A DNA stretch of 52,772 nucleotides. It comes from Macrostomum lignano (lineage: Eukaryota). The position numbers and the translations under genes were made by a program. The notes below the pieces were generated by a model, which searched no databases, had not been told where the DNA came from, and saw only the letters and a list, made by a program, of their open reading frames with translations. The stretch spans positions 1 to 52,772 of the forward strand of contig NIVC01004259.1 in the NCBI GenBank assembly GCA_002269645.1, read 5' to 3'. This document shows positions 471-22,503 of this stretch, piece after piece. Numbering within the stretch: the stretch's first letter is position 1; every line of letters starts with the position of its first letter.

Positions 471-521
<51 letters not shown>

Positions 522-535
522 TCTTGTCTGTCTAT
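1..535. repeat. (TCTG/GACA)n microsatellite
   Basis: Direct 4-bp periodicity with interruptions. Confidence 0.97.
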
Positions 536-1624: not shown

Positions 1625-2052
1625 TTCGAGCTTCGAGATTTGAAAGTTTTGAGTTGGTAAAGTTTCGAGCTTGAGAAGTGGGAAGTTTCGAGCTTGGGAA
1701 GTGGCAAGTTTTGAGCTTGGGAAGTGGGAAGTTTCGAGCTTGGAAGTGGCAAGTTTCGAGCTTGGGAAGTGGCAAGTTTTGAGCTTGGGAAGTGGAAGTT
1801 TCGAGCTTGGGAAGTGGGAAGTTTCGAGCTTGGGAAGTGGCAAGTTTTGAGCTTGGGAAGTGGGAAGTTTCGAGCTTGGGAAGTGGGAAGTTTCGAGCTT
1901 GGGAAGTGGCAAGTTTTGAGCTTGGGAAGTGGGAAGTTTCGAGCTTGGGAAGTGGCAAGTTTTGAGCTTGGGAAGTGGGAAGTTTCGAGCTTGGGAAGTG
2001 GCAAGTTTCGAGCTTGGGAAGTGGAAGTTTCGATCTTTGAAGTTTCGAGCTT
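1625..2052. repeat. 23-bp minisatellite (AAGTTTCGAGCTTGGGAAGTGGG/C)
   Basis: Tandem 23-mers with alternating variants; the overlapping ORFs are repeat translations. Confidence 0.93.
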
Positions 2053-2789
2053 GTAAATTTTTTAGTTTAAGCCTATACATTTTTAGTTTCTCTAAGATCA
2101 GATATGAATTTTCAGCTGATGAAGCTTCAAGTTTCAGTCTTCAGCTTCTTGAAAAAAGAATTGCAGTCGAACACGAGTGAAGCTTAACCAAATCAACATT
2201 CCACCCCAGATGCCTGAGCAGTTCCAGAACTCCATGCCCCCCCCCAATTCTATATATGAGTATAATAGTTTTGAGCCGAGGCGCATTATTTGTCAAGGAG
2301 GGAAGCGGGAGTGCTGCTTGCTGCTGTATTTGCTCCCCTCCCGGTTTGGAGGGCCGGTGTTAGGGAGCGGGTGACGGGGTATAAGGGGAGACAGCTAAGC
2401 TAAGCCTCTATCTTATTCCTTTCTTAATTCTTACACAACTTTTTTTCACAGAACTGCCTGCCCCCCCTGCTGCCGGCTGGCCGGCGCCGCTACAAGGGTG
2501 AATAAGTGACAGGGGGACCCCCCAGTCACGCTGCCGGCTCTCCAACTCCAATGAGCAGCCAGCCGTTCTCAGTGTCGCTATCTACTCGAGCAATTGTTCA
2601 GATCCCGTGTGCTACTCGCCACTTCAACTGTTTGAGTTTCAGCGGGGAATTTGTGTCCCTCGATCCCTTCCTTTCGCGCTCACCGCGCGAGCTCGCCGGC
2701 TTATGACTCATTGGCTTGCGGTTGCTATGTCGAATGTGAGATGACCTGTGACTGGGAAGCTGCGTTAAACACTTAGTTGCTGGGGAAAA

Positions 2790-3470
2790 TGACTCGGTTC
2801 GTGAAATCAGGGGACTCGGTTTGTGGGTCAGGGGACTCGGTTTGTGGGGTCAGAGGACTCTGGATCTGTGGGGGTCAGGGGACTCATTTAAATTGTAGGG
2901 ATCAGAGACAGCGGGTGTCATAACAGGAGTCAGGGGTGTCATAAGGGAATCAGGGGTGTCATAAGGGAGTCAGGGGTGTCATAAAAGGGAGTCAGGGGTG
3001 TCATAAAGGGGAGTCAGGGGTGTCATAAGGGGGTCAGCGGGTGTCATAAAGGGGAGTCAGGGGTGTCATAAAGGGGAGTCAGGGTGTCATAATGGGGAGT
3101 CAGGGGTGTCATAAAGGGGAGTCAGGGGTGTCATAATTGGGTCAGGGGTGTCATAAAGGGGAGTCAGGGGTGTCATAATGGGGAGTCAGGGCGTGCCATA
3201 AAAGGGAGTCAAAGGGTGTCATAATGGGGTCAAGGGTGCCATAAAGGGGAGTCAGGGGTGTCATAAAAGGGAGTCAGGGGTGTCATAGTGGGGAGTCAGG
3301 GTGTCATAGTGGGGAGTCAGGGGTGTCATAAATATGAGTCAGGGGTGTCATAAATATGAGTCAGGGGTGTCATCATGGGGAGTCAGGGGTGTCATAAAGG
3401 GGAGTCAGGGGTGTCATAGTGGGGAGTCAGGGTGTCATAAATATGAGTCAGGGGTGCCATCAAGGGGAGT
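2790..3470. repeat. ~20-22-bp minisatellite (GGGGAGTCAGGGGTGTCATAAA)
   Basis: Tandem G-rich units, degenerate toward the 5' end. Confidence 0.92.
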
Positions 3471-3972
3471 CACGATTAACCCCATGATGAACTTCAAGGA
3501 AGTAACCAAATAAAAAATGAGTGAAAAACATTTACATGATTGACTGATTGACTAATTTATAATGTAACTGCATGCACGCTCAGTTGCTATGCAGGTAGTT
3601 ACAGCACATACAGCTAAAGCATTTTTGATTGAGACCACAAGTATACTACTGTTCAGTTTAACAAACGTACATACGCAAATTTAGCGAAAATGAATTGCAT
3701 CAAGAGAATAACAAATTTTTTTTCTTTAAAATTAATCAATACAATACTACAGCAACAGCAATATCGATGACAATGACGCTAAAGTGCATTTTGTTTCCAA
3801 GAAACTACGAGTACAAATATTCCGACTAAAAATACGGGCGCATTTCAGTTCTAAACTTCAGAAACTAAACTACACGTGTAAACTATGTACATCAGTACTA
3901 AATTATTAAATAATAATAGCACAGGTGATTGCATTGAGAAATATTTTATTTTTTCTGAAAAAAACCGACAGT

Positions 3973-4459
3973 GCGGGTTAATCACGTGACTGAGTACCTA
4001 CGGGCTAATTTAGGCTAAAAGGCCGCGGGTTGATCACGTGACTGAGTACCTACGGGCTAATTTAATTTAGGCTAAAAGGCCGCGGGTTGATCACGTGACT
4101 GAGTACCTACGGGCTAATTTAATTTAGGCTAAAAGGCCGCGGGTTGATCACGTGACTGAGTCACCTACGGGCTAATTTAGGCTAAAAGGCCGCGGGTTGA
4201 TCACGTGACTGAGTCACCTGCAGGCTAATTTAGGCTAAAAGGCCGCGGGTTGATCACGTGACTGAGTACCTACGGGCTAATTTAATTTAGGCTAAAAGGC
4301 CGCGGGTTGATCACGTGACTGAGTCACCTACGGGCTAATTTAGGCTAAAAGGCCGCGGTTGATCACGTGACTGAGTCACCTACGGGCTAATTTAGGCTAA
4401 AAGGCCGCGGGTTGATCACGTGACTGAGTCACCTACGGGCTAATTTAGGCTAAAAGGCC
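3973..4459. repeat. 51-57-bp tandem repeat x9 with a CACGTG core
   Basis: Unit GCGGGTTGATCACGTGACTGAGT(C)ACCTACGGGCTAATTT(AATTT)AGGCTAAAAGGCC, nine copies. Confidence 0.95.
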
Positions 4460-4510
4460 CTTGTTGAGCTGCGAAAACTAAGTTAATTTGATAAACAAAT
4501 GTAGTCTACT

Positions 4511-4562: not shown

Positions 4563-4603
4563 TTACACCTGGCACATCTCTTGCAGGCTGGGCTCCTCTG
4601 CCA

Positions 4604-4665
<62 letters not shown>

Positions 4666-4921
4666 CCAGTTTGTCTTGGCTGCGCGCTCTGCCGCCTGCC
4701 TGCGCCATGCTGCTGCTGATGCTGCTGCTGATGCTGCCTTTCGGCCAGCTCCTTGAATAGGATCAGCGCGTCCTTTCGACCGGCCTTCTGTAAGCAGCGA
4801 CCAAACAGGCCGATGGTGGCGCCGGGACGCTGCGACCAGGTGCGCAGCATCAGCCGGATGGGGCTCTGGCGAAGGGCGTCGGCTTGGGCCTCGAACTCCT
4901 GCACCTCATCGGCTGAGAAGC
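4563..4921 (-). CDS. NGFR: p75NTR-like terminal exon: death domain C-terminal part and polyQ tail
   Basis: Acceptor ttttttttcgcag|GC (phase 1). GFSADEVQEFEAQADALRQSPIRLMLRTWSQRPGATIGLFGRCLQKAGRKDAL aligns to the p75 death domain (GYQPEHIDSF...PVRALLASWATQDSATLDALLAALRRIQRAD). Then ~20 CAG codons and TAA at 4563. Confidence 0.9.
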
Positions 4922-5143
4922 CTGCGAAAAAAAATTTTTTGGTTTTCAGAAATATTTTACTACTTATAGCCGACTCTACTGATAGTAGCAAGCTGGTAGT
5001 TTTCTTTCGGTATAACGGTTTTTATTTTGGTAAGCCATTGTGTCCATTCACAAATCTTTTTCAGTAATCTGCTTCTATCCTTCCAGATCCTTTCAGTAAT
5101 CCGGTTCTACAGTACCCTCCCAGATGAAGGATCCCAGTCTCAC

Positions 5144-5541
5144 CCAGTTCCGTTGCCAGCTCCTTCCAAGCGGCCGGGTCAGGGTTGTTGCTCAGGATAT
5201 TCTCCAAGCGCTGGAACCGGGAGTCCGAGATCTCCTTCAACGGCCGGGTGCTGCTGCTGACCGAAGCGGCCAGAGCTTCGCTGCCGCGAATCCGCTATCG
5301 ACGCTGCGTCGTTTTAGCAGCGCCGCAGGCTGGCAGCTGCGCGGCGGCGGGTACATCGGGCTCTGCGGCGGGATGAGCGCGTTGCTGGCAGGCAGATGCT
5401 GCTGGGTCTTGCGGCTGTACGTTCTGCTCCGGAAGTATTTGAACACGATCCAGACGATCAGGCTGACGATAATGGCGCCCAGCACGGCGCAGTACACTGG
5501 GATCATGTCGTTGCGGCTGCCGGAGTGCCGGCTGACTGGCT
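5144..5541 (-). CDS. NGFR: p75NTR-like TM/juxtamembrane exon plus first death-domain helices (1-nt frameshift at ~5292 as assembled)
   Basis: Acceptor ttttcttcttttgccacttttccag|AG, donor CTG G|gtgaga. EPVSRHSGSRNDMIPVYCAVLGAIIVSLIVWIVFK resembles human p75 DNLIPVYCSILAAVVVGLVAYIAFK. After a frame change: EISDSRFQRLENILSNNPDPAAWKELATELG. Length is 398 nt; 399 is needed for phase 1 to phase 1. Confidence 0.88.
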
Positions 5542-5654
5542 CTGGAAAAGTGGCAAAAGAAGAAAACTTGCATATTTCAGTATATTTCAGTCAGTATAAC
5601 TGCTTTTAGTGCCGGGAATGAAAGGCAATGGGAAATTTGCCTATAGATGGCATA

Positions 5655-6045
5655 CATATGGCACTTGTAGTGTCACTATCAGTGGCACAAAATGGCACCG
5701 GAATGACAATATCGGTGGCACAAAATGGCACCGGGAATAGCAATAAGTGGCACAAAATGGCACCGGGAATGGCAATATCAGCGGCACAAAATGGCACCGG
5801 GAATGGCAATATCGGTGGCACAAAATGGCACCGGGAATGGCAATATCGGTGGCACAAAATGGCAATGGCAATTTTAATGGCAATTTTAATGGCAATATCA
5901 GTGGCGCAAAATGGCACCGGGAATGGCAATATCGGTGGCGCAAAATGGCAACAGGACTGACACATCGGTGGCGCGAAATGGCACCAGGATTGACACTATC
6001 GGGTGTCACAATATGGCATAGGGAATGGCAACATCGGCGGCATGC
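5655..6045. repeat. ~34-bp minisatellite (AAATGGCACCGGGAATGGCAATATCGGTGGCACA)
   Basis: Tandem, moderately diverged units in the intron just upstream of the TM exon. Confidence 0.88.
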
Positions 6046-6529
6046 ATAAAAATGACATTTTAATTGGCCCTAAACGAATGAAATTTAACCTGGCTCTGGC
6101 GTTAGGAATAACACAAAAAATGACACTAGTAAATCTTCATTTTACTACTCAGTTTAGTCTGTTTAGTAGAGTAGTATGTGTCTGACAGTTCCTTTTGTAT
6201 TCCAAAAGAACAAGAGATCAAGTGGGGCTTTCAAATGTATGTTTACATGTTACAAAAAGTGTTATCAGTTAAAGATTTTATTGCGCAGGCTGAAGTGGTG
6301 TGTGAGAAAAACAGAAAGCGAAGTCGTTAGTCAAGTGTTAGTCAAGGGCGCCTTTGAGCACTTTGATATTCTAATTTTGTCTATTGATGTCTGCTCGATT
6401 TTTATGAATTAATTGTACAATTTTAACTGAAAAACTTACTGCAATGTACCTGCAAATGCTGTTGAAGTTAAATTTTGGCATGATTAAATTAAGAAAACGC
6501 CGACTTGCAGAATCCAATTTTTTCAATTC

Positions 6530-7135
6530 CAATTTTGGTGTCCCAATTTTAAAATCCCAATTTTAGAATATCAACTTTCGGATCCCAATTTTAGAATCCC
6601 AATTTTAGAATCCCAATTGTAGAATCCCAATTGTAGAATCCCAATTTTAGAATCCCAATTGTAGAATCCTAAGTTTAGAATCCCAATTGTAGAATCCCAA
6701 TTGTAGAATCCTAAGTTTAGAATCCCAATTTTAGAATCCCAATTGTAGAATCCTAAGTTTAGAATCCCAATTGTAGAATCCCAATTTTAGAATCCCAATT
6801 GTAGAATCCTAAGTTTAGAATCCCAATTGTAGAATCCCAATTTTAGGATCGTAAGTTTAGAATCCTAACTTTAGAATCCCAATTTTAGAATATCAACTTT
6901 CGGATCCCAATTTTAGAATCCCAATTTTAGAATCCAAAGTTTAGAATCCCAATTTTAGAATCCCAATTGTAGAATCCTAAGTTTAGAATCCCAATTGTAG
7001 AATCCCAATTTTAGAATCCCAATTGTAGAATCCCAATTTTAGAATCCCAATTGTAGAATCCTAAGTTTAGAATCCCAATTGTAGAATCCCAATTGTAGAA
7101 TCCTAATTGTAGAATCCCAATTTTGAATCCCAAAT
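6530..7135. repeat. 14-bp minisatellite (CCCAATTTTAGAAT)
   Basis: Direct 14-bp periodicity. Confidence 0.95.
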
Positions 7136-7602
7136 CTCAAATTGCGATTTCAAATGCAGCTTCAATAGCAGGAACTGCAATCAGCATCTCGGAGCGGAGG
7201 CCGGATACTCGCACTCAGTCAGTTTGCAAATCGCGCACAACTTTATCAGCTGCGCGGCTCTGATAGGCAGATGCGCGCACTACAAGAGAGCCATAAATTC
7301 TATCAGGTCGTCCGGCTCCCGTGTGGGGGGGGAGCTGCAGACGCGGAGGCACGAGAGACAATCGCAAGCCTCCCCTTTTATAAGCGCTCTGACTTTCTTT
7401 TTACGACTCTCCGGTCGGACGCAGTCTGCGCGCCTTCGCTATGAAGGCCAAAGCGAAAAGAGGGCCCCGCGTCTCTGCGCTGTATCTGCCCTCTCTGTGC
7501 GCAGTTTTATTGTCGGCCTTCCAGCTGCGGCCTTGTGAATTGTGGAGAGAATGCAGTGAGATAGGGACTGAGGGCTGGGCCTTTCATGGCACCGCTGCTG
7601 CG

Positions 7603-7638
<36 letters not shown>

Positions 7639-7639
7639 C

Positions 7640-7698
<59 letters not shown>

Positions 7699-7699
7699 C

Positions 7700-7730
<31 letters not shown>

Positions 7731-7731
7731 C

Positions 7732-7782
<51 letters not shown>

Positions 7783-7783
7783 C

Positions 7784-7814
<31 letters not shown>

Positions 7815-7815
7815 C

Positions 7816-7878
<63 letters not shown>

Positions 7879-7879
7879 C

Positions 7880-7922
<43 letters not shown>

Positions 7923-7923
7923 C

Positions 7924-7962
<39 letters not shown>

Positions 7963-7963
7963 C

Positions 7964-8002
<39 letters not shown>

Positions 8003-8043
8003 CACAGACAGACAGATAAACAGACAGACAGACAGACAGACAC

Positions 8044-8074
<31 letters not shown>

Positions 8075-8075
8075 C

Positions 8076-8142
<67 letters not shown>

Positions 8143-8161
8143 CACAGACAGACACACAGAT

Positions 8162-8194
<33 letters not shown>

Positions 8195-8245
8195 CACAGA
8201 CAGACACACAGACAGACACAGACAGACAGACAGACAGACAAATAG
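7603..8245. repeat. (GACA)n microsatellite with CACA variants
   Basis: 4-bp periodicity. Confidence 0.97.
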
Positions 8246-8869
8246 ACACATTACTGATGGCACCGAAACAAACTGTCTTCAGGGAAAGTGAGAAGTTGAG
8301 GACATGGAGCGGAGATTCAGGGTGAGAGACTTAGAGGGAGCTGAGCACAAGCCCCATCTCTGAGGTCTGAAACGAGCAGCGAATTCCAATCTCGCCTCTG
8401 CCAAGTGCCAGTGTGCCAGCAACGCAATTCCAAATTGGCTGAGCCTGGGCGAATCCCCGAGCATCGCCGTCCAGTTTGAATGATGACGGGGGGAGTCTGC
8501 GTGGGAAGCGAGTTCCGCACGCATTCAGCGATGCCGCGCGTACGAAGAAGGTCGTTTATCTTCGAAGCCAGCCGCGGAAGCGATCGGGAGTCTGGAAATG
8601 CCGCCGCCGGTGCCTCGCTGGGGTGGAGGGCGACGGCGAAATCGGATTAGTCTCAAATCCGGCCACCTCCGAGCTGAGGAACGCAAATCGAATATTTTGG
8701 CCGGCAGCCAAAAATCTTGCTGCTGCTGCTGCTGCTGGCGCGGATCGGAGTCCAGGATTGTTGCGGAATCGGGGAAGCTGATGACATCGTCGGCTGGCCT
8801 ATGCGGCTCGGTCACATATTTGAGCTCGAGAGTTCAGGACTGTCGCAACCATCTCAATTGCCATATTTC

Positions 8870-9685
8870 CCCCACTTCCCCTCTCTCCCCTCTCACTTGC
8901 CCTCTCTCCCCTCTCACTTGCCCTCTCTCCCTCTCACTTCCCCTCTCTCCCCTCTCTCCCCCCACTTCCCCTCTCTCCCCTCTCACTTCCCCTCTCTCCC
9001 CTCTCACTCCCCCTTTCTCCCCTCTCACTTCCCCTCTCTCCACTCTCACTTGCCCTCTCTCCCCTCTCTCCCCCACTTCCCCTCTCTCCCCTCTCACTTC
9101 CCCTCTCTCCCCTCTCTCCCCCACTTCCCCTCTCTCCCCTCTCTCCCCACTTCCCCTCTCTCCCTCTCACTTCCCCTTTCTCCCCTCTCACTTCCCCTCT
9201 CTCCACTCTCACTTGCCCTCTCTCCCCTCTCTCCTCCCCACTTCCCCTCTCTCCCCTCTCACTTGCCCTCTCTCCCCTCTCACTTCCCCTCTCTCCCCTC
9301 TCTCCCCCACTTCCCCTCTCTCCCCTCTCACTTCCCCTCTCTCCCCTCTCACTTCCCTTTTCTCCCCTCTCACTTGCCCTCTCTCCCCTCTCACTTGTCC
9401 TCTCTCTCATCTCACTTGCCCTCTCTCCCCTCTCACTTGCCCTCTCTCCCCTCTCGCTTTCCCTCTCTCCCCTCTCGCTTTCCCTCTCTCCCCTCTCGCT
9501 TTCCCTCTCTCCCCTCTCGCTACCCCTCTCTCCCCTCTCGCTTCCCCTATCTCCCCTCTCGCTTTCCCTCTCTCCCCTCTCGCTTTCCCTCTCTCCCCTC
9601 TCGCTACCCCTCTCTCCCCTCTCGCTTCCCCTATCTCCCCTCTCGCTTTCCCTCTCTCCCCTCTCGCTACCCCTCTCTCCCTCGC
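8870..9685. repeat. Polypyrimidine ~21-bp minisatellite (CACTTCCCCTCTCTCCCCTCT)
   Basis: Strand-asymmetric C/T array with variant blocks. Confidence 0.93.
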
Positions 9686-10369
9686 CCCCACTCCAAAGAG
9701 CACCCAGCACAGCACCACCCAGCAGCATGATCGCTAGTTGTCCAAGGATTTGCATCTCCCAGCAGCAGCAGCTGCCTCAACCGCAGAAAAATTCCCATAT
9801 CCTTAACCGGGCTTTCCGCGTAAGATACGGGCCGCTTGGGATATAAAGCTGTAAAGCAAGAAAGTTTTATGGGTTTTTTTGGTGCTATATACGCGCGCGG
9901 CGGCGTATTATATGGTGTTGTCAAAGCCGCAACTGCCCCAAGAACAAGACTGCATGCCCGGTTTTATTGCACCAGCTTATACGAGAGCTCGCAGTCAGTT
10001 TTTTCAGACCGCCCGCCCCGCCGTTCCGAAGTTGTAAAAAATCTCTTCTCGCTAACGATCAAAGGAAAACTAGCGACACTATTGACTGGGTGAGGGCGGG
10101 GGGCGCTATAATTTTTTGGGGGGAGTTTCTCGCTATAAAACTTTGGGTCTGGCATTGTGCTTATGCCTTTTTAAAACCATTTTTACTGGCCCAAAGCCAC
10201 TCAAAACCTGAGGTAGATCATTTTATTACTAAAGTGTGCGTATCTCCGTGTTTATACTTTGTGTTTCAGAGTTTTTACTTGGAATGAATTGATAAAAATA
10301 TCTCATTCGCATTGATAAGTCTATCCGCTCCATGAACTGGTGGTCTCAATATCCTTAATGATTGGACTG

Positions 10370-10755
10370 GCGGCCTCAAAATCCGTGATGAATTTGACTG
10401 CATGGTGGCCTCAGAAACCGCCATCCTGGCGGCCTCAAAGACAGTCATGGATGGACTGGCGGCCTCAAAGACAGTTATCGATGGACTAGCGGCCTCAGAA
10501 ACCACCATGAACGGACTAGCGGCCTCAGAAACCACCAGGAATGGACTGGCGGCCTCAGAAACCACCATGAATGGACTGGCGGCCTCAGAAACCACCATGA
10601 ATGGGCTGGCGGCCTCAGAAACCACCATGAATGGGCTGGCGGCCTCAGAAACCACCATGAATGGACTGGCGGCCTCAGAAACCACCATGAATGGGCTGGC
10701 GGCCTCAGAAACCACCATGAATGGACTGGCGGCCTCAGAAACCACCATGAATGAA
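10370..10755. repeat. 30-bp minisatellite (GGACTGGCGGCCTCAGAAACCACCATGAAT)
   Basis: About 12 units, more diverged at the 5' end. Confidence 0.92.
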
Positions 10756-11087
10756 CGGCCCGAAACCGCCCGGGATGAATCACTGGAAAGTTTGCTAAAG
10801 CAGAAAATGCGCAAAAAGAATCGAGCTAAAAATGGGATAATCTAAAAAAACCAGCCGGAAAACTTTTCTCCCAAGCACGGAGGGGATTTTCCTCCTTCTG
10901 TTGCGACAAGATTCGGCGCTATAGAAGACCCAGATAGTGGACTGACAGCGGCGCAGTTCCCCCTTATCCCTTTCCCCGTGTTTGCGTCCTTTGCATACGG
11001 CGGAACTCCACACTACAGCAGAATCGACCGAGTGTTATTTAGAATGAAGCGCATAATTTTCTGTCGGTTCCGGTTTCCAGACAAGTA

Positions 11088-11088
<1 letters not shown>

Positions 11089-11155
<67 letters not shown>
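11089..11155. repeat. (CT)n microsatellite
   Basis: Dinucleotide run. Confidence 0.97.
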
Positions 11156-11159
<4 letters not shown>

Positions 11160-11515
11160 TTAATTAGAACGCAACTGGAGGGGGCGCGCAGCCGCTTTAA
11201 AATAAAGTGGGAAATGCGGAGTTTCCACGAAAACGCAGTTCGGCTTTGCACCCCCCCCCCCTAGGTTTCGCGATATAATAAACTAACAATGCCGGGGGTA
11301 TATCGTCTTCTTCTTGCGGTTCGGCTTGGACTGTGCGAATAAAATATAAAATTCTATTTTTTAAGGTGTGACTTATAATGATTTTCTAGCAGCACAGAGT
11401 TTATGCATAGTATTCGATTACTAACTAAGGACTGATGGCGATTTTTGGGGAAACTGAAGAAGGTAATCCTGAAGCCGCAATATCCGCTTAATATCCACTG
11501 ACCAAAGTGCGAATC

Positions 11516-12581
11516 TGAGGACAGTGCCCCCTGAGAACAGTATCCCATGAGGACAGTGACCCCTGAGAACAGTATCCCATGAGGACAGTGCCCCCTGAGA
11601 ACAGTATCCCATGAGGACAGTGCCCCATGAGGACAGTATCCCATGAGGACAGTATCCCATGAGGACAGTGCCCCATGAGGACAGTATCCCATGAGGACAG
11701 TATCCCATGAGGACAGTATCCCATGAGGACAGTGCCCCATGAGGACAGTATCCCATGAGGACAGTATCCCATGAGGACAGTATCCCATGAGGACAGTGCC
11801 CCCTGAGAACAGTATCCCATGAGGACAGTGACCCCTGAGAACAGTATCCCATGAGGACAGTGCCCCCTGAGAACAGTATCCCATGAGGACAGTGCCCCAT
11901 GAGGACAGTATCCCATGACGACAGTATCCCATGAGGACAGTATCCCATGAGGACAGTATCCCATGAGGACAGTATCCCATGAGGACAGTATCCCATGAGG
12001 ACAGTATCCCATGAGGACAGTATCCCATGAGGACAGTGCCCCATGAGAACAGTATCCCATGAGGACAGTATCCCATGAGGACAGTGCCCCCTGAGGACAG
12101 TGCCCCATGAGGACAGTGCCCCATGAGGACAGTATCCCATGAGGACAGTATCCCATGAGGACAGTATCCCATGAGGACAGTATCCCATGAGGACAGTATC
12201 CCATGAGGACAGTATCCCATGAGGACAGTATCCCATGAGGACAGTATCCCATGAGGACAGTATCCCATGAGGACAGTATCCCATGAGGACAGTATCCCAT
12301 GAGGACAGTATCCCATGAGGACAGTATCCCATGAGGACAGTATCCCATGAGGACAGTATCCCATGAGGACAGTATCCCATGAGGACAGTATCCCATGAGG
12401 ACAGTATCCCATGAGGACAGTATCCCATGAGGACAGTATCCCATGAGGACAGTAGCCCATGAGGACAGTATCCCATGAGGACAGTATCCCATGAGGACAG
12501 TAACCCATGAGGACAGTATCCCATGAGGACAGTAACCCATGAGGACAGTAGCCCATGAGGACAGTATCCCATGAGGACAGT
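11516..12581. repeat. 16-bp minisatellite (GAGGACAGTATCCCAT)
   Basis: About 66 units, beginning ~75 nt into the intron after the stalk exon donor. Confidence 0.96.
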
Positions 12582-12656
12582 AAGAACACAAAATCATTGA
12601 GAAATTGGCAAAGTCACAGAAGAGGCAAGAGCCACAAACACCAGTCGCTCCCTCAC

Positions 12657-12881
12657 CTTCAGTCCGGGCCACCTGGGTGAGGTTGAAGCGAGCCAAGTTA
12701 ATGGGTGGCCTAGGGTTGCCATTGTCGATGAGCTCTTTCCAGTCGGACAGCGGCCTGCTCTGCGGCTGCTTTTGCTGCTTGCGAAGAAATGAACCTTCTT
12801 CAGCCGGCTGCTGCTGCTGCTGTTGCAGGTCCCGAAATACAGAGTCAGCAGTGACGGCACCCGGCGACAGCTCTGTGGCAT
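12657..12881 (-). CDS. NGFR: p75NTR-like stalk exon (Q/P-rich linker)
   Basis: Acceptor cacttctccag|AT (phase 1) and donor GAA G|gtgagg (phase 1), 225 nt, in frame with the CRD and TM exons. Encodes ATELSPGAVTADSVFRDLQQQQQQPAEEG...QVARTE. Confidence 0.65.
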
Positions 12882-13430
12882 CTGGAGAAGTGGTCGGCGC
12901 CATGCTTAGCAGCCTGGATCCAAACGGCAACAGGCTTTTTCCCACCCTGGCTACACTCCCAATGTTCGAATGAATTCGCTGCAGCTAGTCTGCGTTCAAA
13001 GCCGAGCTGCGCCGGTTTTTTTAACGCCGAAAAGAAGGTAATTTTGAATTCGAACTTATAAAAGGCGGCCCCCAGCGCAGTGCAGTTGCTTTTGGATGAA
13101 ACCGAGCCAGCCAATGAGCTGGGGCCGGTGCAAAAACGGCTGAACGGGCTGGAAATCTCTTCTCTTCATAGATAGCTTCCTGCTATCTACGATTTATCTG
13201 GTTTAACGATGTCCTTAGCATGCTACTGACTTCAGTAGTGTGGGAAGAATATAATTTCGCTTATTTATCGATCTGGATGCATTTCTGCTTTAAACGTCTC
13301 AATCTCTACGAAACTAAGTAGTAGTCTAAGTAGTGACCATGCCAGGTGTTTTGCATTTATATTTATTTTTCAAAAAAAATATTCAATCGTTTTTTTCCTC
13401 TTCCGTTGAGGGCTACGATTACTTGCTCCG

Positions 13431-13695
13431 ATAGTTTACTAAAGGAGACTCTCTTTCTATCCCCATCATCAGCCAATCAAGAAGCTCAGATAGCTTACTA
13501 GCGAGGAGGCTCTCTTTCTACCCCCATCAGCCAATCAAAAAGCTCAGATAGCTTACTATGTAGCGAGGAGGCTCTCTTTCTACCCCCAACAGCCCCATCA
13601 GCCAATCAAGAAGCTCAGATAGCTTACTAGCGAGGAGGCTCTATTTCTACCCCCATCAGCCAATCAAAAAGCTCCGATAGCTTACTAGCGAGGAG
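13431..13695. repeat. ~58-72-bp tandem repeat x4 overlapping the CRD-exon donor site
   Basis: Unit GATAGCTTACTAGCGAGGAGGCTCTCTTTCTACCCCCATCAGCCAATCAA(G/A)AAGCTCA. Four GCTTAC copies (minus-strand GTAAGC) at 13493, 13551, 13622 and 13680. Confidence 0.85.
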
Positions 13696-14232
13696 ACCGC
13701 TGGCTTCAGAGCGGCAGACAGGTCCGGATGGTCGCTGGCAGGTTTCGGGCAGTAGCTGGTAACCGGGTGGACAGGCGGTAGCGCAGAGCCGGCAGATTCT
13801 GTTGGGCAGGCCGGCTAGGGGCGCCGAGAAGCTCCCAGCTGGGCAGGGCGCGCAGTCGGCCTGCCGAGTGCCGTTGCAGCTGGCTGGGTCCACGAGGCCC
13901 TGGCCAATCGGGCAGCTGGCGCAGGGCGCGCAGTCACCGCCGCGCAACCGGTAATAGCCGTCGGCGCATGGGCAGATGGTGTCCCGCTCGGCGGTGCACT
14001 CGGACACCAGCCTCTCGGACGGCCGGTTGCACGGTCGGCATTTTTCGCAGTTGTACAGCGCGCTAACTGCGGCGCTGAATGTGCGCATCTGACCAGAGCT
14101 GCACGGAACGCATTCGGTGTCGTGGAATTTGCCCGTAGCCTCATCCCTGTAGCACTTGGTGATCATGCCGTAGCCTTTGGCACACGGCCTGCAGCATAGC
14201 GAGCCAACGCTCTCCGTTCCTGGCCGACATTT
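13686..14232 (-). CDS. NGFR: p75NTR-like exon encoding four TNFR cysteine-rich domains
   Basis: Acceptor tttaacctacag|AAA TGT (phase 0), donor GCT A|gtaagc (phase 1), 547 nt. Translation KCRPGTESVGSLCCRPCAKGYG...CVPC..TFSAAVSALYNCEKCRPC...CTAERDTICPCADGYY...CAPCASCPIGQGLV...C...CAPCPAGSFS...CRLC..C...C..PVC follows the p75NTR CRD1-4 pattern (CCxxC, TFSxxVSA, CxCxxGYY, GxGLV, CPxGxF/YS). Confidence 0.92.
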
Positions 14233-14869
14233 CTGTAGGTTAAACCAGTTTTGATACGTGAAAGTCTCTCCCTCGCTGGTTTCATGTAGCTCACGCATTT
14301 GATTGGCTGCTGAGGGTAGAAAGTAGCATCTAGCCTCTGATAAGGGGGAAGAGGGGAAGGGTGGTGTCTGGCCTCTGATTGGCTGCTGGGTGAGGGGTAG
14401 GGTAGTGTCTGGCCTCTGCTTGGCTGCGGGAATAAAATACCACTTAATAATCTCTACGTTAATGATAGTACTTTTTAGCTGCCTGTTTAAACTTTTCTCG
14501 TGCAAAAATCGTAGCAACAGATTCTACTTACAGTAGAAAGACAAGGATATGAGTTATCAAACAAAGATACGCGCATTAGACAAAGAACGAGCTGATTCGA
14601 TTTTAATGACTGAACTCATTAAAAATGTAGGAATTTTTATTTAAAAGTTTTGAGTGAATCTGATGCTAGGTACTAACCTACATGCTCAGATATAATCAGA
14701 TATCTGTGTTGAGGGACCCTATTGTCTATATACCTCACTTCGTAGGCCCCCACGTTTGATGTGGGCACAGATTAATGAAACTTGGAGAGGGAGCAGCCCT
14801 ATTTCACTACCGCATACATGTAGGTGCAAGTGTGCGGTTCGGGTATATTGCTTGAATAAAACCGGTTAC

Positions 14870-14971
14870 TGCCCTGCTACAGACAGACCGACGTGCGCTG
14901 GCACATTTTACAGCAGCGGCAGCAGCAAACAACAACTGGCACACAGAGGGGGCAGAGGCAATACTGACTTG
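14870..14971 (-). CDS. Candidate signal-peptide exon of the p75NTR-like gene
   Basis: Open frame SIASAPSVCQLLFAAAAAVKCASARRSVCSRA. Possible acceptors at 14971 (phase 0) or 14963 (phase 2); phase-0 donors at 14912 (gtaaaa) or 14870 (gtaacc) match the CRD exon. Splice signals are weak. Confidence 0.35.
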
Positions 14972-15190
14972 CTGTATCAACTTTAGACACACCCAGGCTC
15001 AGGGGAATCCGGCCCCCCCGCCGCCGCTGCCATCGTAAACTTTTTTATGACGACCTCGGCCACCCCCCCCCCCCTAACAATATGGCAGCGCCTGGCTGCA
15101 TGGCTCGGCTCAAAAAGTTGCCCTAAAACACTTCTTACTGACTATAATATGCTCAGCCGCATTAATTAGTGGTAGTGCCTTAGTGTGTTG

Positions 15191-18100
15191 GCAGAATGGC
15201 ACTGAGACATGCAGAATGGCACTGAGACATGCAGAATGGCACTGAGACATGCAGAATGGCACTGAGACATTCAGAATGGCACTGAGACATACAGAAGGGC
15301 ACTGAGACATGCAGAATGGCACTGCAGATTTCAGAAGGGCACTGAGACATGCAGAATGGCACTGAGACATGCAGAATGGCACTGAGACATGCAGAATGGC
15401 ACTGAGACATGCAGAAGGGCACTGAGACATGCAGAATGGCACTGAGACATGCAGAATGGCACTGAGACATGCAGAAGGGCACTGAGACATGCAGAATGGC
15501 ACTGAGACATGCAGAATGGCACTGAGACATGCAGAATGGCACTGAAGAACTCAGAAGGGCACTGAGACATGCAGAATGGCACTGAGACATGCAGAATGGC
15601 ACTGAGACATGCAGAATGGCACTGAAGAACTCAGAAGGGCACTGAGACATGCAGAATGGCACTGAGACATGCAGAATGGCACTGAAGAACTCAGAAGGGC
15701 ACTGAGACATGCAGAATGGCACTGAGACATGCAGAAGGGCACTGAGACATGCAGAATGGCACTGAGACATGCAGAATGGCACTGAGACATGCAGAATGGC
15801 ACTGAGACATGCAGAATGGCACTGAGACATGCAGAATGGCACTGAGACATGCAGAAGGGCACTGAGACATGCAGAATGGCACTGAGACATGCAGAATGGC
15901 ACTGAGACATGCAGAATGGCACTGAGACATTCAAAATGGCACTGAGACATTCAGAATGGCACTGAGACATGCAGAATGGCACTGAGACATGCAGAATGGC
16001 ACTGAGACATGCAGAATGGCACTGAGACATGCAGAATGGCACTGAGACATTCAAAATGGCACTGAGACATGCAGAATGGCACTGAGACATGCAGAATGGC
16101 ACTGAGACATGCAGAATGGCACTGAGACATGCATAATGGCACTGAAGAACTCAGAAGGGCACTGAGACATTCAAAATGGCACTGAGACATGCAGAATGGC
16201 ACTGAGACATGCAGAATGGCACTGAGACATGCAGAATGGCACTGAGACATGCAGAATGGCACTGAGACATGCAGAAGGGCACTGAGACATGCAGAATGGC
16301 ACTGAGACATGCAGAAGGGCACTGAGACATGCAGAATGGCACTGAGACATGCAGAATGGCACTGAGACATTCAAAATGGCACTGAGACATTCAGAATGGC
16401 ACTGAGACATGCAGAATGGCACTGAGACATGCAGAATGGCACTGAGACATGCAGAATGGCACTGAGACATTTAAAATGGCACTGAGACATGCAGAAGGGC
16501 ACTGAGACATGCAGAATGGCACTGAGACATTCAAAATGGCACTGAGACATTCAGAATGGCACTGAGACATGCAGAATGGCACTGAGACATGCAGAATGGC
16601 ACTGAGACATGCAGAATGGCACTGAGACATTTAAAATGGCACTGAGACATGCAGAAGGGCACTGAGACATGCAGAATGGCACTGAGACATTCAAAATGGC
16701 ACTGAGACATTCAGAATGGCACTGAGACATGCAGAATGGCACTGAGATATGCAGAATGGCACTGCAGACTTCAGAAGGGCACTGAGACATGCAGAATGGC
16801 ACTGAGACATGCAGAATGGCACTGAGACATGCAGAAGGGCACTGAGACATGCAGAATGGCACTGAGACATGCAGAATGGCACTGAGACATGCAGAAGGGC
16901 ACTGAGACATGCAGAATGGCACTGAGACATGCAGAATGGCACTGAGACATGCAGAATGGCACTGAAGAACTCAGAAGGGCACTGAGACATGCAGAATGGC
17001 ACTGAGACATGCAGAATGGCACTGAGACATGCAGAATGGCACTGAGACATGCAGAATGGCACTGAGACATGCAGAATGGCACTGAAGAACTCAGAAGGGC
17101 ACTGAGACATGCAGAATGGCACTGAGACATGCAGAATGGCACTGAAGAACTCAGAAGGGCACTGAGACATGCAGAATGGCACTGAGACATGCAGAATGGC
17201 ACTGAGACATGCAGAATGGCACTGAGACATGCAGAATGGCACTGAGACATGCAGAATGGCACTGAGACATGCAGAATGGCACTGAGACATGCAGAATGGC
17301 ACTGAGACATGCAGAATGGCACTGAGACATGCAGAATGGCACTGAGACATGCAGAATGGCACTGAGACATGCAGAATGGCACTGAGACATGCAGAATGGC
17401 ACTGAGACATTCAAAATGGCACTGAGACATGCAGAATGGCACTGAGACATGCAGAATGGCACTGAGACATGCAGAATGGCACTGAGACATGCAGAATGGC
17501 ACTGAGACATGCAGAATGGCACTGAGACATGCAGAATGGCACTGAAGAACTCAGAAGGGCACTGAGACATGCAGAATGGCACTGAGACATGCAGAATGGC
17601 ACTGAGACATGCAGAATGGCACTGAGACATGCAGAATGGCACTGAGACATGCAGAAGGGCACTGAGACATGCAGAATGGCACTGAGACATTTAAAATGGC
17701 ACTGAGACATGCAGAAGGGCACTGAGACATGCAGAATGGCACTGAGACATTCAAAATGGCACTGAGACATTCAGAATGGCACTGAGACATGCAGAATGGC
17801 ACTGAGACATGCAGAATGGCACTGAGACATGCAGAATGGCACTGAGACATTTAAAATGGCACTGAGACATGCAGAAGGGCACTGAGACATGCAGAATGGC
17901 ACTGAGACATTCAAAATGGCACTGAGACATTCAGAATGGCACTGAGACATGCAGAATGGCACTGAGATATGCAGAATGGCACTGCAGACTTCAGAAGGGC
18001 ACTGAGACATGCAGAATGGCACTGAGACATGCAGAATGGCACTGAGACATGCAGAATGGCACTGAGACATGCAGAAGGGCACTGAGACATGCAGAATGGC

Positions 18101-18900
18101 ACTGAGACATTCAAAATGGCACTGAGACATGCAGAATGGCACTGAGACATGCAGAATGGCACTGAGATATGCAGAATGGCACTGAGACATGCAGAATGGC
18201 ACTGAGACATGCAGAATGGCACTGAGATATGCAGAATGGCACTGAGACATGCAGAATGGCACTGAGACATGCAGAATGGCACTGCAGAACTCAGAAGGGC
18301 ACTGAGACATTCAAAATGGCACTGAGACATGCAGAATGGCACTGAGACATGCAGAATGGCACTGAGACATGCAGAATGGCACTGCAGAACTCAGAAGGGC
18401 ACTGAGACATTCAAAATGGCACTGAGACATGCAGAATGGCACTGAGACATGCAGAATGGCACTGAGACATGCAGAATGGCACTGAGACATGCAGAATGGC
18501 ACTGAGATATGCAGAATGGCACTGAGACATGCAGAAGGGCACTGAGACATGCAGAATGGCACTGAGACATGCAGAATGGCACTGAGACATGCAGAATGGC
18601 ACTGAGACATGCAGAATGGCACTGAGACATGCAGAATGGCACTGAGACATGCAGAATGGCACTGAGACATGCAGAAGGGCACTGAGACATGCAGAATGGC
18701 ACTGAGACATGCAGAATGGCACTGAGACATGCAGAATGGCACTGAGACATGCAGAATGGCACTGAGACATGCAGAATGGCACTGAGACATGCATAATGGC
18801 ACTGCTGATTTCAGAAGGGCACTTAGACATGCAGAAGGGCACTGAGACATGCAGAATGGCACTGAGATATGCAGCATGGCACTGCAGAATTCAGAAGGGC
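15191..18900. repeat. 20-bp minisatellite (ACTGAGACATGCAGAATGGC), ~185 copies
   Basis: Strict 20-bp period over 3.7 kb with recurrent variants. It fills most of the putative first intron. Confidence 0.98.
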
Positions 18901-18951
18901 AACAAGTCGCCCGGGCTGACACAGATGTCTTAAGACCTTCCCAGATCTTAC

Positions 18952-19002
18952 CTGCGGCTGTCCATCGGCAGGCTTCACCAGTGCAGCTCTAACTCTTGGC
19001 AT
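18952..19002 (-). CDS. Candidate first coding exon of the p75NTR-like gene
   Basis: Strong donor CCGCAG|gtaaga at 18952/18951. ATG at 19002 (MPRVRAALVKPADGQPQ, phase 0) or 18965 (MDSR, phase 2); both can join the 14.9-kb candidate exon in the same frame. TATA box ~110 nt upstream. Confidence 0.4.
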
Positions 19003-19111: not shown

Positions 19112-19178
19112 TTTATATACCACCAAGTCCTGTAATTGCTCCAAACAAAAGCCGCCGGGTCGCCGCGGTCGGGCCAAT
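19112..19178 (-). promoter_or_regulatory. Candidate core promoter (TATATAAA + CCAAT)
   Basis: Minus-strand TATATAAA at 19119-19112 with a CCAAT element at ~19174-19178, upstream of the candidate first exon. Confidence 0.4.
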
Positions 19179-19740
19179 GGTGAGCGGCCATTAATTCGCC
19201 TTTACAATTTTTAATTGCAGGTAGGGGGAGGGGTGGAAAGTGTGCGGGGCGGCCCAAGAATGGCATCAAACGCGGCCGCGTGGATTTCTGACCCGTCGTT
19301 TTGCTCCCGCAGACTGGCAGTGAAAGCAGGCGCAGCTCCCACTGCCAATACGGCCAGACCGCTCTGGGCCATAAACCAAAAAAGTGGGGCAGAGAAGAGT
19401 CGACCGCAAGGCGCGCAGCCAAGGACACCCAGTACGAGAACCTGGAGTGACAACTGTAGGGGTCTCTTGGTAGTTTTAACACAATTTTCCACGGCATATT
19501 TCTTATTATATTAAGATATCATAAATTCCGCTTGTTTTTGTAAATTTGGTCTCAATTCACACCCGAATATATACATCATAATCAATACATAAATCATACA
19601 TAAATTAAACATAAATAAATAAAAATACATAAATACATAAATCCGCATTTGAAAACACCAGAATTTAAGAGCACCCCTTCCGGAAGGCCTCTACTACACC
19701 TGCACTACATTTGTACTGCAGCATCTGGACGTTAAACCGT

Positions 19741-20482
19741 GGGTCTAACCATTAGACAGGCAGGTTTAATCATTAGACAGGCAGGTTTAACCATTAGACA
19801 GGCAGGTTTAATCATTAGACAGGCAGGTTTAACCATTAGACAGGCAGGTTTAACCATTAGACAGGCAGGATTGATCATTAGACAGGCAGGTTTAACCATT
19901 AGACAGGCAGGTTTAACCATTAGACAGGCAGGTTTAACCATTAGACAGGCAGGTTTAACCATTAGACAGGCAGGATTGATCATTAGACAGGCAGGTTTAA
20001 CCATTAGAAAAGCAAGTTTAACCATTAGACAGGCAGGTTTAACCATTAGACAGGCAGGATTGATCATTAGACAGGCAGGTTTAACCATTAGAAAAGCAAG
20101 TTTAACCATTAGACAGGCAGGTTTAACAATTAGACAGGCAGGTTTAACCATTAGACAGGCAGGTCTAACCATTAGACAGGCAGGTTTAACCATTAGACAG
20201 GCAGGTTTATTCATTAGACAGGCAGGTTTAACCATTAGACAGACAGGATTGATCATTAGACAGGCAGGTTTAACCATTAGAAAAGCAAGTTTAACCATTA
20301 GACAGGCAGGTTTAACCATTAGAAAAGCAAGTTTAACCATTAGACAGGCAGGTTTAACCATTAGACAGGCAGGTTTAACCATTAGACAGGCAGGTTTAGC
20401 CATTAGACAGGCAGGTTTAACCATTAGACAGGCAGGTTTAGCCATTAGACAGACAGGTTTAACCATTAGACAGGCAGGTTTA
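19741..20482. repeat. 21-bp minisatellite (TTAGACAGGCAGGTTTAACCA)
   Basis: About 35 units. Confidence 0.95.
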
Positions 20483-21129
20483 GCACTAGTTAATAAACAC
20501 TAATAGACACTATACACTAGTAAATGCCTGTAATGCAGTCGCTTGTAAACCAGCTTCTGGCTCCAGGCCTCCTTGGCACAACAGAAATATTATTATGGGA
20601 AGGCCACAAGGAACATAAACGTTGGTGCCTTGCATAAAAGAGGCAGGCCGCGGTCTGCTAGAGAGGGGGGAATAAAAATCTGCTTCGAAATCCCCCCGAC
20701 AGACTGCATAATAAAACCCGGGCGAGCTGGTGATGCAGGCCATTGCGGCTCCGCTGCCCAGTCTGTCAGCCTCTCGCGGTTAGAAGCTCAGAGGTTTGAT
20801 GAGGGACCTTGATGGGAGAAATTCATGGTAAGCTGAGGCGGATATAGACAGCCATATAAGTCGCATTTTATGTCCGCACGGAGCGGCGGCTTTCTTTTCG
20901 GGCGTTTCGGCAAAAGCAGAAGACACACAGACAGAAGAAAGCAATGCTGAAGGATTCGTGCGCGTTGCTTTCAAACTGCAGGGGGTATTAAAAACTCTCA
21001 AACTGAAAGGCAACCAAATTTGATTGCATAAATTGCTGCATATTCATAAATAAGTAATGAGCTCAACCGCTGCCAATTCGGTGTGTTGGTGAATAAAGGA
21101 ACCGCAGTGAATGCAAAAAAGGACCAGTG

Positions 21130-21385
21130 AATGCTTGATCTTGATCAGTGAATCTTGAGAAGAGATCAGTGAATCCTAAGTGAACCCTGAACAAAGATCA
21201 GTGAATCCTGAGTGAGTCCTGAACAAAGATCAGTGAGTCCTGAGAAAACATCAGTGAGTCCTGAGAAAAGATCAGTGAGTCCTGAGCAAAGATCAGTGAA
21301 TCCTGAGCAAAGATCAGTGAGTCCTGAGCAAAGATCAGTGAATCATGAGCAAAGATCAGTGAGTCCTGAACGAAGATCCGTGAAT
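21130..21385. repeat. 21-bp minisatellite (GAGCAAAGATCAGTGAGTCCT)
   Basis: About 10-12 units, degenerate ends. Confidence 0.85.
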
Positions 21386-21869
21386 CTTAAACATGCACGC
21401 CTCAATAAAGTATTAAATTCCTGCATTTGTGAATTTGAAGCAAGGTAAGGTAAGTGCGCAGTGAGTTAGAAGGAGGCGAACCCCTGGCCACCCACCGCCG
21501 CCAGGCCAGACGCCTATTGGGCACAAAGGCGCACCCGGCTCTCGGAAAATGAGAAAGATGTTACAGCGAAAGAGAGAGGGGGGAAAGGAAAAAGTAATAA
21601 AAAGTTGCTACACGAAAAAACAAACTGCTACACCAACATTGAGTCAGCATTTTAAAATTGGGGGATCGCAATTATCCTGCTCCACTAAAGCGCCAAAATT
21701 GAAACAAATGCGACAAGCGAGAGATACAAAGGAGACGAAGAACAGCAGAGGAATTCAATCCCAGTAAATCATATTTGGGGGATTCCCATGGGTGCCCAAG
21801 GGGCCTCCGGCTTTCACTAAGTCCAGAAACTGGAGTACGGAGCCGGAGGAAAAACAGAGGGACAATCTT

Positions 21870-22503
21870 GGATCTGGGATCGGGATCTGGGATCGGGATC
21901 TGGGATCGGGATCTGGGATCGGGATCTGGGATCGGGATCTGGGATCGGGATCTGGGATCGGGATCTGGGATCGGGATCTGGGATCGGGATCTGGGATCGG
22001 GATCTGGGATCGGGATCTGGGATCGGGATCTGGGATCGGGATCTGGGATCGGGATCTGGGATCGGGATCTGGGATCGGGATCTGGGATCGGGATCTGGGA
22101 TCGGGATCTGGGATCGGGATCTGGGATCGGGATCTGGGATCGGGATCTGGGATCGGGATCTGGGATCGGGATCTGGGATCGGGATCTGGGATCGGGATCT
22201 GGGATCGGGATCTGGGATCGGGATCTGGGATCGGGATCTGGGATCGGGATCTGGGATCGGGATCTGGGATCGGGATCTGGGATCGGGATCTGGGATCGGG
22301 ATCTGGGATCGGGATCTGGGATCGGGATCTGGGATCGGGATCTGGGATCGGGATCTGGGATCGGGATCTGGGATCGGGATCTGGGATCGGGATCTGGGAT
22401 CGGGATCTGGGATCGGGATCTGGGATCGGGATCTGGGATCGGGATCTGGGATCGGGATCTGGGATCGGGATCTGGGATCGGGATCTGGGATCGGGATCTG
22501 GGA
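21870..22503. repeat. 13-bp perfect tandem repeat (GGGATCTGGGATC)
   Basis: About 49 essentially identical units. Confidence 0.98.

Follow-up and report, generated by a model that had tools for sequence, protein, structure and literature searches.

Bertevello et al. (2020, Parasit Vectors 13:491; PMC7519573) reported TNF receptors in 30 flatworm species, one per species, and described them as “structurally remarkably similar to NGFR.” For the free-living flatworm Macrostomum lignano they reported a receptor with four TNFR domains, a transmembrane (TM) segment and a conserved death domain, for which the best human BLASTp match was NGFR (E 4.8e-20, over the full length). Their Table S1 placed its gene, BOX15_Mlig018038g1, on several scaffolds, including [quoted passage not shown]. 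Our study deals with this copy. The DNA analysed, hereafter called the window, is the complete 52,772-nucleotide (nt) contig NIVC01004259.1 of M. lignano (GenBank assembly GCA_002269645.1; positions 1 to 52,772 of the forward strand), which is named scaf4260 in the Mlig_3_7 assembly and carries a five-exon receptor gene on its minus strand (19002..4563). The exon blocks listed for scaf4260 in Table S1 correspond to the coordinates of this gene in the window.

This receptor is already known: its NGFR-like architecture, its death domain and even its scaffold coordinates were published in 2020 (Bertevello et al., 2020), and the protein is present in UniProt and NCBI. As a discovery the locus matters little. 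What our analysis adds is a copy with a broken reading frame, an N-terminus without a signal peptide, intron positions that tie the gene to those of lophotrochozoans, and a paralog lacking cysteine-rich domains (CRDs). We consider, with a probability of roughly 85%, that the locus represents one genomic copy (scaf4260) of the single CRD-bearing TNFR superfamily gene, BOX15_Mlig018038, and that this gene is the flatworm member of an ancient, Bilateria-wide family of p75NTR-like (“PITA” or TNFRSF16-like) death receptors. The initial annotation of the sequence had called a p75NTR/NGFR-type death receptor of the TNFR superfamily, possibly in a flatworm, and is in this respect borne out.

Architecture of the encoded receptor

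The exon structure was obtained by direct reading of the sequence together with scripted exon assembly, and the spliced protein matched the M. lignano protein A0A1I8HNW7 with 97% identity at 100% coverage in a protein search. The gene encodes, in this order, four CRDs, a stalk, a p75-type TM helix with a conserved cysteine, a DSG motif and a six-helix death domain. Pfam recognizes TNFR_c6 (E 2e-10), TNFR_16_TM (PF18422; 30.4 bits as against a gathering score of 25.6) and Death (E 1e-13; 51.6 bits), and these domain matches are far beyond chance. The parts of the gene are listed below, a slash marking an exon boundary.

19112..19119, minus strand: TATATAAA box, situated some 115 nt upstream of the annotated start codon and seen in the sequence itself; a putative promoter element
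18952..19002, minus strand: annotated coding exon 1, 51 nt, ATG..MPRVRAALVKPADGQPQ, with donor GTAAGA and phase 0, from sequence reading; N-terminus the same as in the published BOX15_Mlig018038g1
14233..18951, minus strand: intron 1 of 4.7 kb, largely made up of about 186 copies of a 20-nt tandem repeat (15191..18901)
13686..14232, minus strand: CRD exon of exactly 547 nt with the four CRDs, starting CAG/AAA TGT.., phase 0 in and phase 1 out
12657..12881, minus strand: stalk exon, 225 nt, phase 1 in and out, encoding a Gln-rich stalk of about 90 amino acids (aa) and ending ..QVARTE/, in agreement with A0A1I8HNW7 and the published protein
5144..5541, minus strand: exon with the TM segment, the juxtamembrane region and the N-terminal half of the death domain, 398 nt (399 expected in intact copies), ending ..WKELATELG at a phase-1 GTGAGA donor
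5432..5503, minus strand: TM helix IPVYCAVLGAIIVSLIVWIVFKYF, Pfam PF18422 at 30.4 bits, with MIPVYC and the Cys codon at 5489..5491
5291..5299, minus strand: juxtamembrane DSG motif, ..KRRSVDSGF.., from sequence reading and family alignment
4563..4921, minus strand: last exon with the C-terminal half of the death domain and a Gln/His-rich tail, ..EMCQV, stop TAA at 4563..4565
4605..4664, minus strand: (CAG)20 polyglutamine tract in the C-terminal tail, coding

Within the stretch 5541..5144 the TM helix is read as MIPVYCAVLGAIIVSLIVWIVFKYF, and a Pro/Gln-rich juxtamembrane region separates it from VDSGF. The four CRDs claimed in the initial annotation are confirmed by the 24 cysteines in the CRD exon, the TNFR_c6 match and a confident AlphaFold2 (AF2) model of the ectodomain showing four CRDs (predicted local distance difference test, pLDDT, 90.9). 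The stalk, the TM cysteine motif, the DSG motif and the death domain were likewise all found on the minus strand between 19002 and 4563, and two finer statements, that all CRDs lie in one 547-nt exon and that a phase-1 intron interrupts the death domain at ELG, proved exact. The description of this as a “full architecture” holds for the CRDs, the stalk, the TM helix, the DSG motif and the death domain. It does not hold for the N-terminus, where no signal peptide can be recognized, nor for the continuity of the frame, which is broken between the DSG motif and the death domain (see below).

Affinity to p75NTR-like receptors

A library of 1.84 billion representative proteins was searched with the intact protein. 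Below the M. lignano entries stood proteins of 370-450 aa that covered both the ectodomain and the part from the TM helix to the death domain. All of the best non-flatworm matches that were looked up by name are annotated as TNFRSF16, TNFRSF16-like or p75 neurotrophin receptor-like (Patella, Mytilus, Crassostrea, Pinctada, Ruditapes, Saccoglossus, Limulus, Tubulanus, Lingula, Priapulus, Acanthaster, Anneissia, and Capitella). Molluscs, brachiopods, nemerteans, annelids, hemichordates and echinoderms are thus represented among the best matches. One match, from lamprey, shares the domain architecture and carries no annotated name, and a few of the top matches come from unnamed read assemblies. 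Wherever this was looked up, the matches carry TNFR_c6, TNFR_16_TM and Death.

An alignment of 24 sequences, comprising the window protein and 23 p75-like receptors, is colinear from CRD1 to the C-terminus, with the CRD cysteines, P272 and C275 of the TM segment and a W, L, R and D of the death domain being invariant. In an alignment restricted to ectodomains, each of the 24 cysteines is retained in all 17 p75-like ectodomains compared. Codon 5489..5491 encodes the Cys that lines up with the TM cysteine conserved in both p75NTR and NRADD, and the only TM segment matches in the PDB are the TM chains of these two proteins; the best match among solved structures in a phmmer search of the PDB is also NRADD, through its TM segment and death domain. 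VDSGF aligns with the DSG(V/I) of family members, and a DSG-type motif was found by pattern in most of the p75-like matches.

Scored against solved structures, the family profile gives 151 bits with the p75NTR ectodomain, compared to 107 with OPG, 100 with CD40, 95 with DR6, and 65 with TNFR1, no other TNFR exceeding the score of OPG, and on death domains it gives 80 bits with p75 vs. 51 with MyD88. The AF2 model of the death domain (pLDDT 90.4) has six helices, and its best Foldseek match is the p75NTR death domain 4F42 (TM-score 0.86; root-mean-square deviation, rmsd, 1.5 A), narrowly before MyD88.

The assignment to the p75 family rests on the TM segment, the colinear architecture, the best library matches and the intron positions, and not on the ligand-binding domain. 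Placement by the ectodomain only was attempted with BLOSUM distances, the HMM (hidden Markov model) score and Foldseek, all of which failed to separate p75 from other four-CRD TNFRs. The initial annotation had considered a grouping with DR6 or EDAR-like receptors as the outcome that would speak against its proposal. Similarity scores, no formal tree having been built, gave no such grouping: in the phmmer search against the PDB the DR6 ectodomain was matched with an E-value of 1.3e-3, as compared to 2.6e-6 for p75 and 6.5e-8 for TNFR1, and no EDAR, XEDAR or TROY chain was among the matches of that search.

Compared with vertebrate p75NTR/NGFR (TNFRSF16), the M. lignano receptor has the same domain order, the TM cysteine (equivalent to Cys257) in the LIPVYC motif and a DSG motif resembling HSDSG. 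The ectodomain is 29-30% identical in structural alignment and the death domain has 4F42 as its best match in fold (rmsd 1.5 A). It differs in that no similarity to the chopper domain was seen and in its C-terminus, which is ..CQV in M. lignano and ..SPV in the vertebrate protein. Other four-CRD TNFRs (CD40, TNFR1, DcR3/OPG, and DR6) share the elongated four-CRD ectodomain and reach comparable sequence and structure scores with it when it is taken alone, but none of their chains matched the M. lignano TM segment in the PDB search.

Gene structure in related receptors

The exons of homologs were mapped on their genomic loci, the vertebrate comparison being based on one lamprey gene, mapped by tblastn. 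In Patella, Crassostrea, and Lingula a single exon of 499-511 nt holds all four CRDs (phase 0 in, phase 1 out). It is preceded by a short signal-peptide exon (phase 0) and followed by one with the stalk, TM segment and DSG motif, then by a short one that stops in phase 1 at ..ELG, and by the last exon. The window gene has the CRD exon, including its phases, and the phase-1 intron at ELG in common with these three genera. Schistosoma turkestanicum has kept a phase-1 intron at the ELG position (..LASIMN/), the only one of these two features that it shares with them. The death domain is unsplit in Saccoglossus and in lamprey, where the intron at the ELG position is absent, and the lamprey p75-like gene has CRD2-4 in an exon of their own. 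Consequently, the statement in the initial annotation that this structure differs from that of vertebrate NGFR agrees with the one vertebrate gene compared, with its separate CRD2-4 exon and unsplit death domain.

The exon structure of the window gene is thus the ordinary one of spiralian TNFRSF16-like genes and no oddity. It is possible that the phase-1 intron at ELG constitutes a spiralian, or protostome, gene-structure marker for p75-like receptors. The intron positions are a firmer tie between the flatworm receptors and lophotrochozoan TNFRSF16-like genes than the published tree with its weak support.

The likeness to the spiralian and other invertebrate p75NTR-like receptors (“PITA”; Patella, Crassostrea, Mytilus, Lingula, and the p75 of Capitella and Platynereis) also comprises the four CRDs with 24 cysteines, the xIPxYC motif of the TM segment, the DSG motif, a death domain with W..LA.ELG(F/Y), and a C-terminal Val. 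There are also differences. The stalk measures 20-30 aa in these receptors and about 90 aa, rich in Gln, in M. lignano, which also has insertions in CRD1 and CRD3, a divergent ectodomain (82 bits against the family HMM), an exon 1 without a signal peptide, and an extra intron before the TM segment. It lacks the intron between the DSG motif and the death domain as well as the ..VEYSKAS.. juxtamembrane block.

A separate observation concerns a parasitic schistosome. Its receptor has an ectodomain nearer to the p75-like consensus (130 bits) than the free-living M. lignano (82 bits), yet has lost a readily recognisable death domain.

The broken reading frame of the scaf4260 copy

No single open frame runs through the 398-nt stretch 5541..5144, a point missed in the initial annotation: the frame on the DSG side and that of the death domain differ in this copy. 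Two positions describe the break.

5284..5290, minus strand: frame-break site, TTCGCGG; by protein comparison intact copies must read TTCGGCGG (F-G-G), and the window has one G fewer
5237..5239, minus strand: TGA ending the TM reading frame, from sequence reading

The frame of the TM segment runs ..KRRSVDSGFAAAKLWPLRSAAAPGR and stops at TGA 5239..5237; past the DSG motif this same frame continues as ..DSGFAAAKLWPLRSAAAPGR up to that stop. The death domain is in a frame different from that of the TM part, with a TAG just upstream in it. The break lies two codons past the DSG motif, between the TM part and the death domain. The intact copies (A0A1I8HNW7 and the published protein) read ..DSGFGGSEALAAS.. 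here, and the stretch corresponding to the frame-shifted one is ..VDSGFGGSEALAASVSSSTRPLKEISD.. in the intact versions of the protein. From these protein sequences it follows that TTCGCGGCAGC of the window must be TTCGGCGGCAGC in intact copies, and thus that one G is missing at 5284..5287. A short intron that would repair the frame was also considered. All GT/GC..AG pairs within 5541..5144 were enumerated, none of which has credible splice signals, and the intact copies read straight through.

The break aside, the window copy differs from the published 513-aa protein by eight substitutions, one Q indel and the length of the polyglutamine tract, and contains no other stop. The tract varies between copies, with 20 Q in the window copy and six Q in the published one. 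With regard to the described platyhelminth TNFR family (the SmTNFR homologs, including BOX15_Mlig018038g1), therefore, this is the same gene, the window copy being distinguished by the frame break and by (CAG)20 in place of six Q.

The published mapping bears on the same site. The exon with the TM segment and the death-domain half was mapped as an unsplit block of 402 nt on scaf131 and scaf4765 and as two overlapping blocks totalling 401 nt on scaf4260, and the split on scaf4260 (5276-5285) coincides exactly with the frame break; the scaf1980 copy looks fragmented in the same mapping (Bertevello et al., 2020). Uninterrupted coding from the CRDs to the death domain was consequently not found in the scaf4260 copy, whereas other copies are intact according to the protein sequences and the published mapping.

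The N-terminus

The peptide encoded by exon 1, MPRVRAALVKPADGQPQ, has no hydrophobic core, its maximum Kyte-Doolittle average over nine residues being 0.84. The initial annotation did not see that this exon encodes no signal peptide. In the published table the entry for BOX15_Mlig018038g1 is likewise “signal peptide: No” (Bertevello et al., 2020). A search of the 16 kb upstream for another signal-peptide exon gave none with a strong donor, only candidates with weak donors, among which one deserves mention.

27713..27778, minus strand: hypothetical alternative exon 1 that would encode a classical-looking signal peptide, MWPTGVLLLILLPGLCAGGLTR, and a weak phase-0 donor, GTAACT; a sequence pattern only

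This candidate exon (27778..27713) would join in frame, in phase 0, to KCRPG.. at 14232, 13.5 kb downstream, and it is preceded by TATAAG and two CCAAT motifs, the promoter-like motifs extending to about 28130. The receptor may have its true first exon, or an alternative one, here, or the pattern may be due to chance.

Probable mode of action and candidate ligands

In vertebrates, p75NTR is explained by a model of dimers linked through Cys257, and its death domain recruits adaptors. By homology, the intact M. lignano protein would be a single-pass membrane receptor dimerizing via the TM cysteine and a small-xxx-small TM motif, which beside the TM cysteine reads A....S in M. lignano as against A...G. 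A dimeric or trimeric extracellular ligand would then bind along the elongated stack of CRDs, and signalling might proceed by recruitment of adaptors to the death domain and the juxtamembrane region, the receptor presumably having no enzymatic activity of its own. The C-terminus, ..QV, is similar to the hydrophobic ends of other protostome members.

The ectodomain is too divergent for prediction of a ligand and, therefore, the locus alone cannot make the retention of neurotrophin signalling in flatworms testable. TNF ligand homologs have been found in M. lignano and canonical ligand binding has been argued for (Bertevello et al., 2020), and our literature search found no specific report of a flatworm neurotrophin or Trk. 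TNF-family ligands of M. lignano are at least as likely to be the ligand as a neurotrophin-like cystine-knot protein. The gene thus says little about neurotrophin signalling, because its ectodomain alone is indistinguishable from those of other four-CRD TNFRs, being about as near to CD40, TNFR1 or DcR3 as to p75, and because M. lignano has TNF ligands. The suggestion in the initial annotation that the locus would bear on this question in flatworms is, for these reasons, not sustained.

Alternative explanations

A number of observations weigh against the assignment to the p75NTR-like family. In the phmmer search against the PDB the ectodomain alone scores higher with TNFR1 and CD40 than with p75NTR. 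Its 82 bits against an HMM of p75-like ectodomains built free of flatworms fall short of the more than 105 bits of complete bona fide members and the 130 bits of the schistosome TNFR. Foldseek, run on the ectodomain model, ranks CD40 top by E-value and p75 third, although p75 has the highest identity, and the model matches CD40, p75NTR, DcR3, DR6, TNFR2, and RANK about equally. The death domain is by sequence alone nearer to those of MyD88 and of death domain (DD)-SH2 proteins than to that of vertebrate p75; the closest ones within the match set are those of amphioxus and hemichordate DD-SH2 proteins and short fragments consisting of a death domain only. Furthermore, the juxtamembrane block before the DSG motif (..EPHEDVEYSKAS..), conserved in other protostome members, is absent from the window protein. 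A first exon without a signal peptide is odd for a receptor with a 285-residue ectodomain, and the published Bayesian tree joins the flatworm TNFRs to NGFR with low support only (Bertevello et al., 2020).

Two statements of the initial annotation have to be qualified accordingly. Its “p75-type” death domain is favoured only by the predicted fold (4F42) and the family profile, and not by plain sequence comparison, where MyD88 and DD-SH2 proteins outscore the vertebrate p75 death domains. Its claim that the combination of domains defines p75NTR over generic TNFRs stands for the TM segment, which is specific, but not for the ectodomain. The weak affinity of the ectodomain to p75, the generic sequence of the death domain and the low support in the published tree (Bertevello et al., 2020) are what one would expect if the gene were no p75 ortholog at all but a TNFR peculiar to its lineage, with a p75-like TM segment and a death domain gained through convergence or exon shuffling. 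We regard this as highly improbable, since such an origin would have to account for an alignment that is colinear over the full length, a Pfam match specific for the p75 TM segment, TNFRSF16-like annotations for every named best library match, and intron positions and phases identical to those of mollusc and brachiopod TNFRSF16-like genes.

Much closer to an even chance, though still just below it, is the explanation that the receptor, its family membership notwithstanding, works as an ordinary TNF receptor, looking p75-like because this was the ancestral form of TNFRs, and binding the TNF/EDA/BAFF-like ligands of M. lignano as a death receptor engaged by trimers. The occurrence of such ligands with argued canonical binding (Bertevello et al., 2020) is consistent with this, as are the PITA preprint, which argues that the p75-like form is the ancestral TNFR and is present in cnidarians, the equal closeness of the ectodomain to CD40, TNFR1, DcR3, and p75NTR, and the lack of flatworm neurotrophin or Trk reports in our literature search. 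On the other hand, the conserved TM cysteine and TM motif would, if vertebrate data apply, suggest a disulfide dimer that exists before ligand binding, as it does for p75NTR, and not a ligand-induced trimer, and neurotrophin and Trk do exist in annelids and molluscs that have orthologous receptors (PMC4812194; PMC2772990).

The frame break, finally, can be read in two ways. A single G lost from a GG run is a typical residual consensus error of long-read assemblies, and the 166 codons downstream of the break contain no stop and only two substitutions with respect to the reference copy. We, therefore, lean slightly towards such a residual single-base error rather than a true lesion in one of the several redundant copies that this polyploid genome contains. 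The opposite view, to which we would assign a substantial probability although somewhat less than one half, is that the window holds a genuine pseudogene or truncated homeolog with a real one-base deletion. The product would then be 375 aa long at most and, with CRDs, TM helix and DSG motif and without the death domain, could be decoy-like or dominant-negative, leaving the function to the copies on scaf131 and scaf4765. The break itself, the stop at 5239..5237 and the want of a rescuing intron all agree with this. So does the published mapping, in which the aligner split the exon of the TM segment and death domain only on scaf4260 and, more severely, on scaf1980, and in which several scaffold copies are listed, a redundancy that would permit decay (Bertevello et al., 2020). 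An older, error-rich gene model from another assembly (ML2-derived) also reads ..DSGSAAAKLWPLR.. in the shifted frame after the DSG motif, which again favours a real break; this model is, however, full of other frame errors, and its support is weak.

A paralog lacking cysteine-rich domains

M. lignano also possesses a p75-like paralog without CRDs, BOX15_Mlig015487g2 (282 aa), which was examined in NIVC01002132.1:105478-130364, with the gene at 10001..14887 of that stretch. It has Pfam matches to TNFR_16_TM, above threshold, and Death. Its three exons include the end of the stalk exon (..STE/E, phase 1) and the phase-1 intron at the ELG position (..AAEMG/) as they occur in the window gene. We detected no CRD-like sequence within 10 kb upstream of it, and a POU-homeobox gene is located 2 kb upstream. 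A second CRD-less M. lignano protein of the same kind may be a partial model.

The paralog has the architecture of NRADD/NRH2, the mammalian CRD-less relatives of p75, and apparently arose within the flatworm lineage. NRADD, the best single PDB match of the window protein through its TM segment and death domain, is without CRDs, as opposed to four in the window gene, and the exon structure of the TM segment and death domain in BOX15_Mlig015487g2 is that of the window gene. A paralog of this type would escape a search based on TNFR domains, and in the accessible part of Bertevello et al. (2020) we found no mention of CRD-less paralogs or of introns. It is conceivable, though unlikely in our view, that the window receptor and the CRD-less BOX15_Mlig015487 together form a two-component p75 system, independent of the mammalian p75NTR/NRADD pair, that answers a neurotrophin-like ligand; if so, neurotrophin-type signalling would survive in flatworms.

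The remainder of the window

No other genes were seen in the regions of the window that were checked: in 1..4500 and 19500..36600 every open reading frame of at least 90-110 aa is either a translated minisatellite or a short frame of no note. Minisatellite arrays fill much of the window. A tandem-repeat scan showed a 14.5-kb array of a 24-nt satellite, GATTATTGCACTTGATAAACCAAG, at 36558..51029, which is broken by a different repeat block of 59-98 nt. This block recurs at about 38.65, 42.83, and 47.1 kb, and its spacing of about 4.2 kb suggests a higher-order periodicity of the satellite array.

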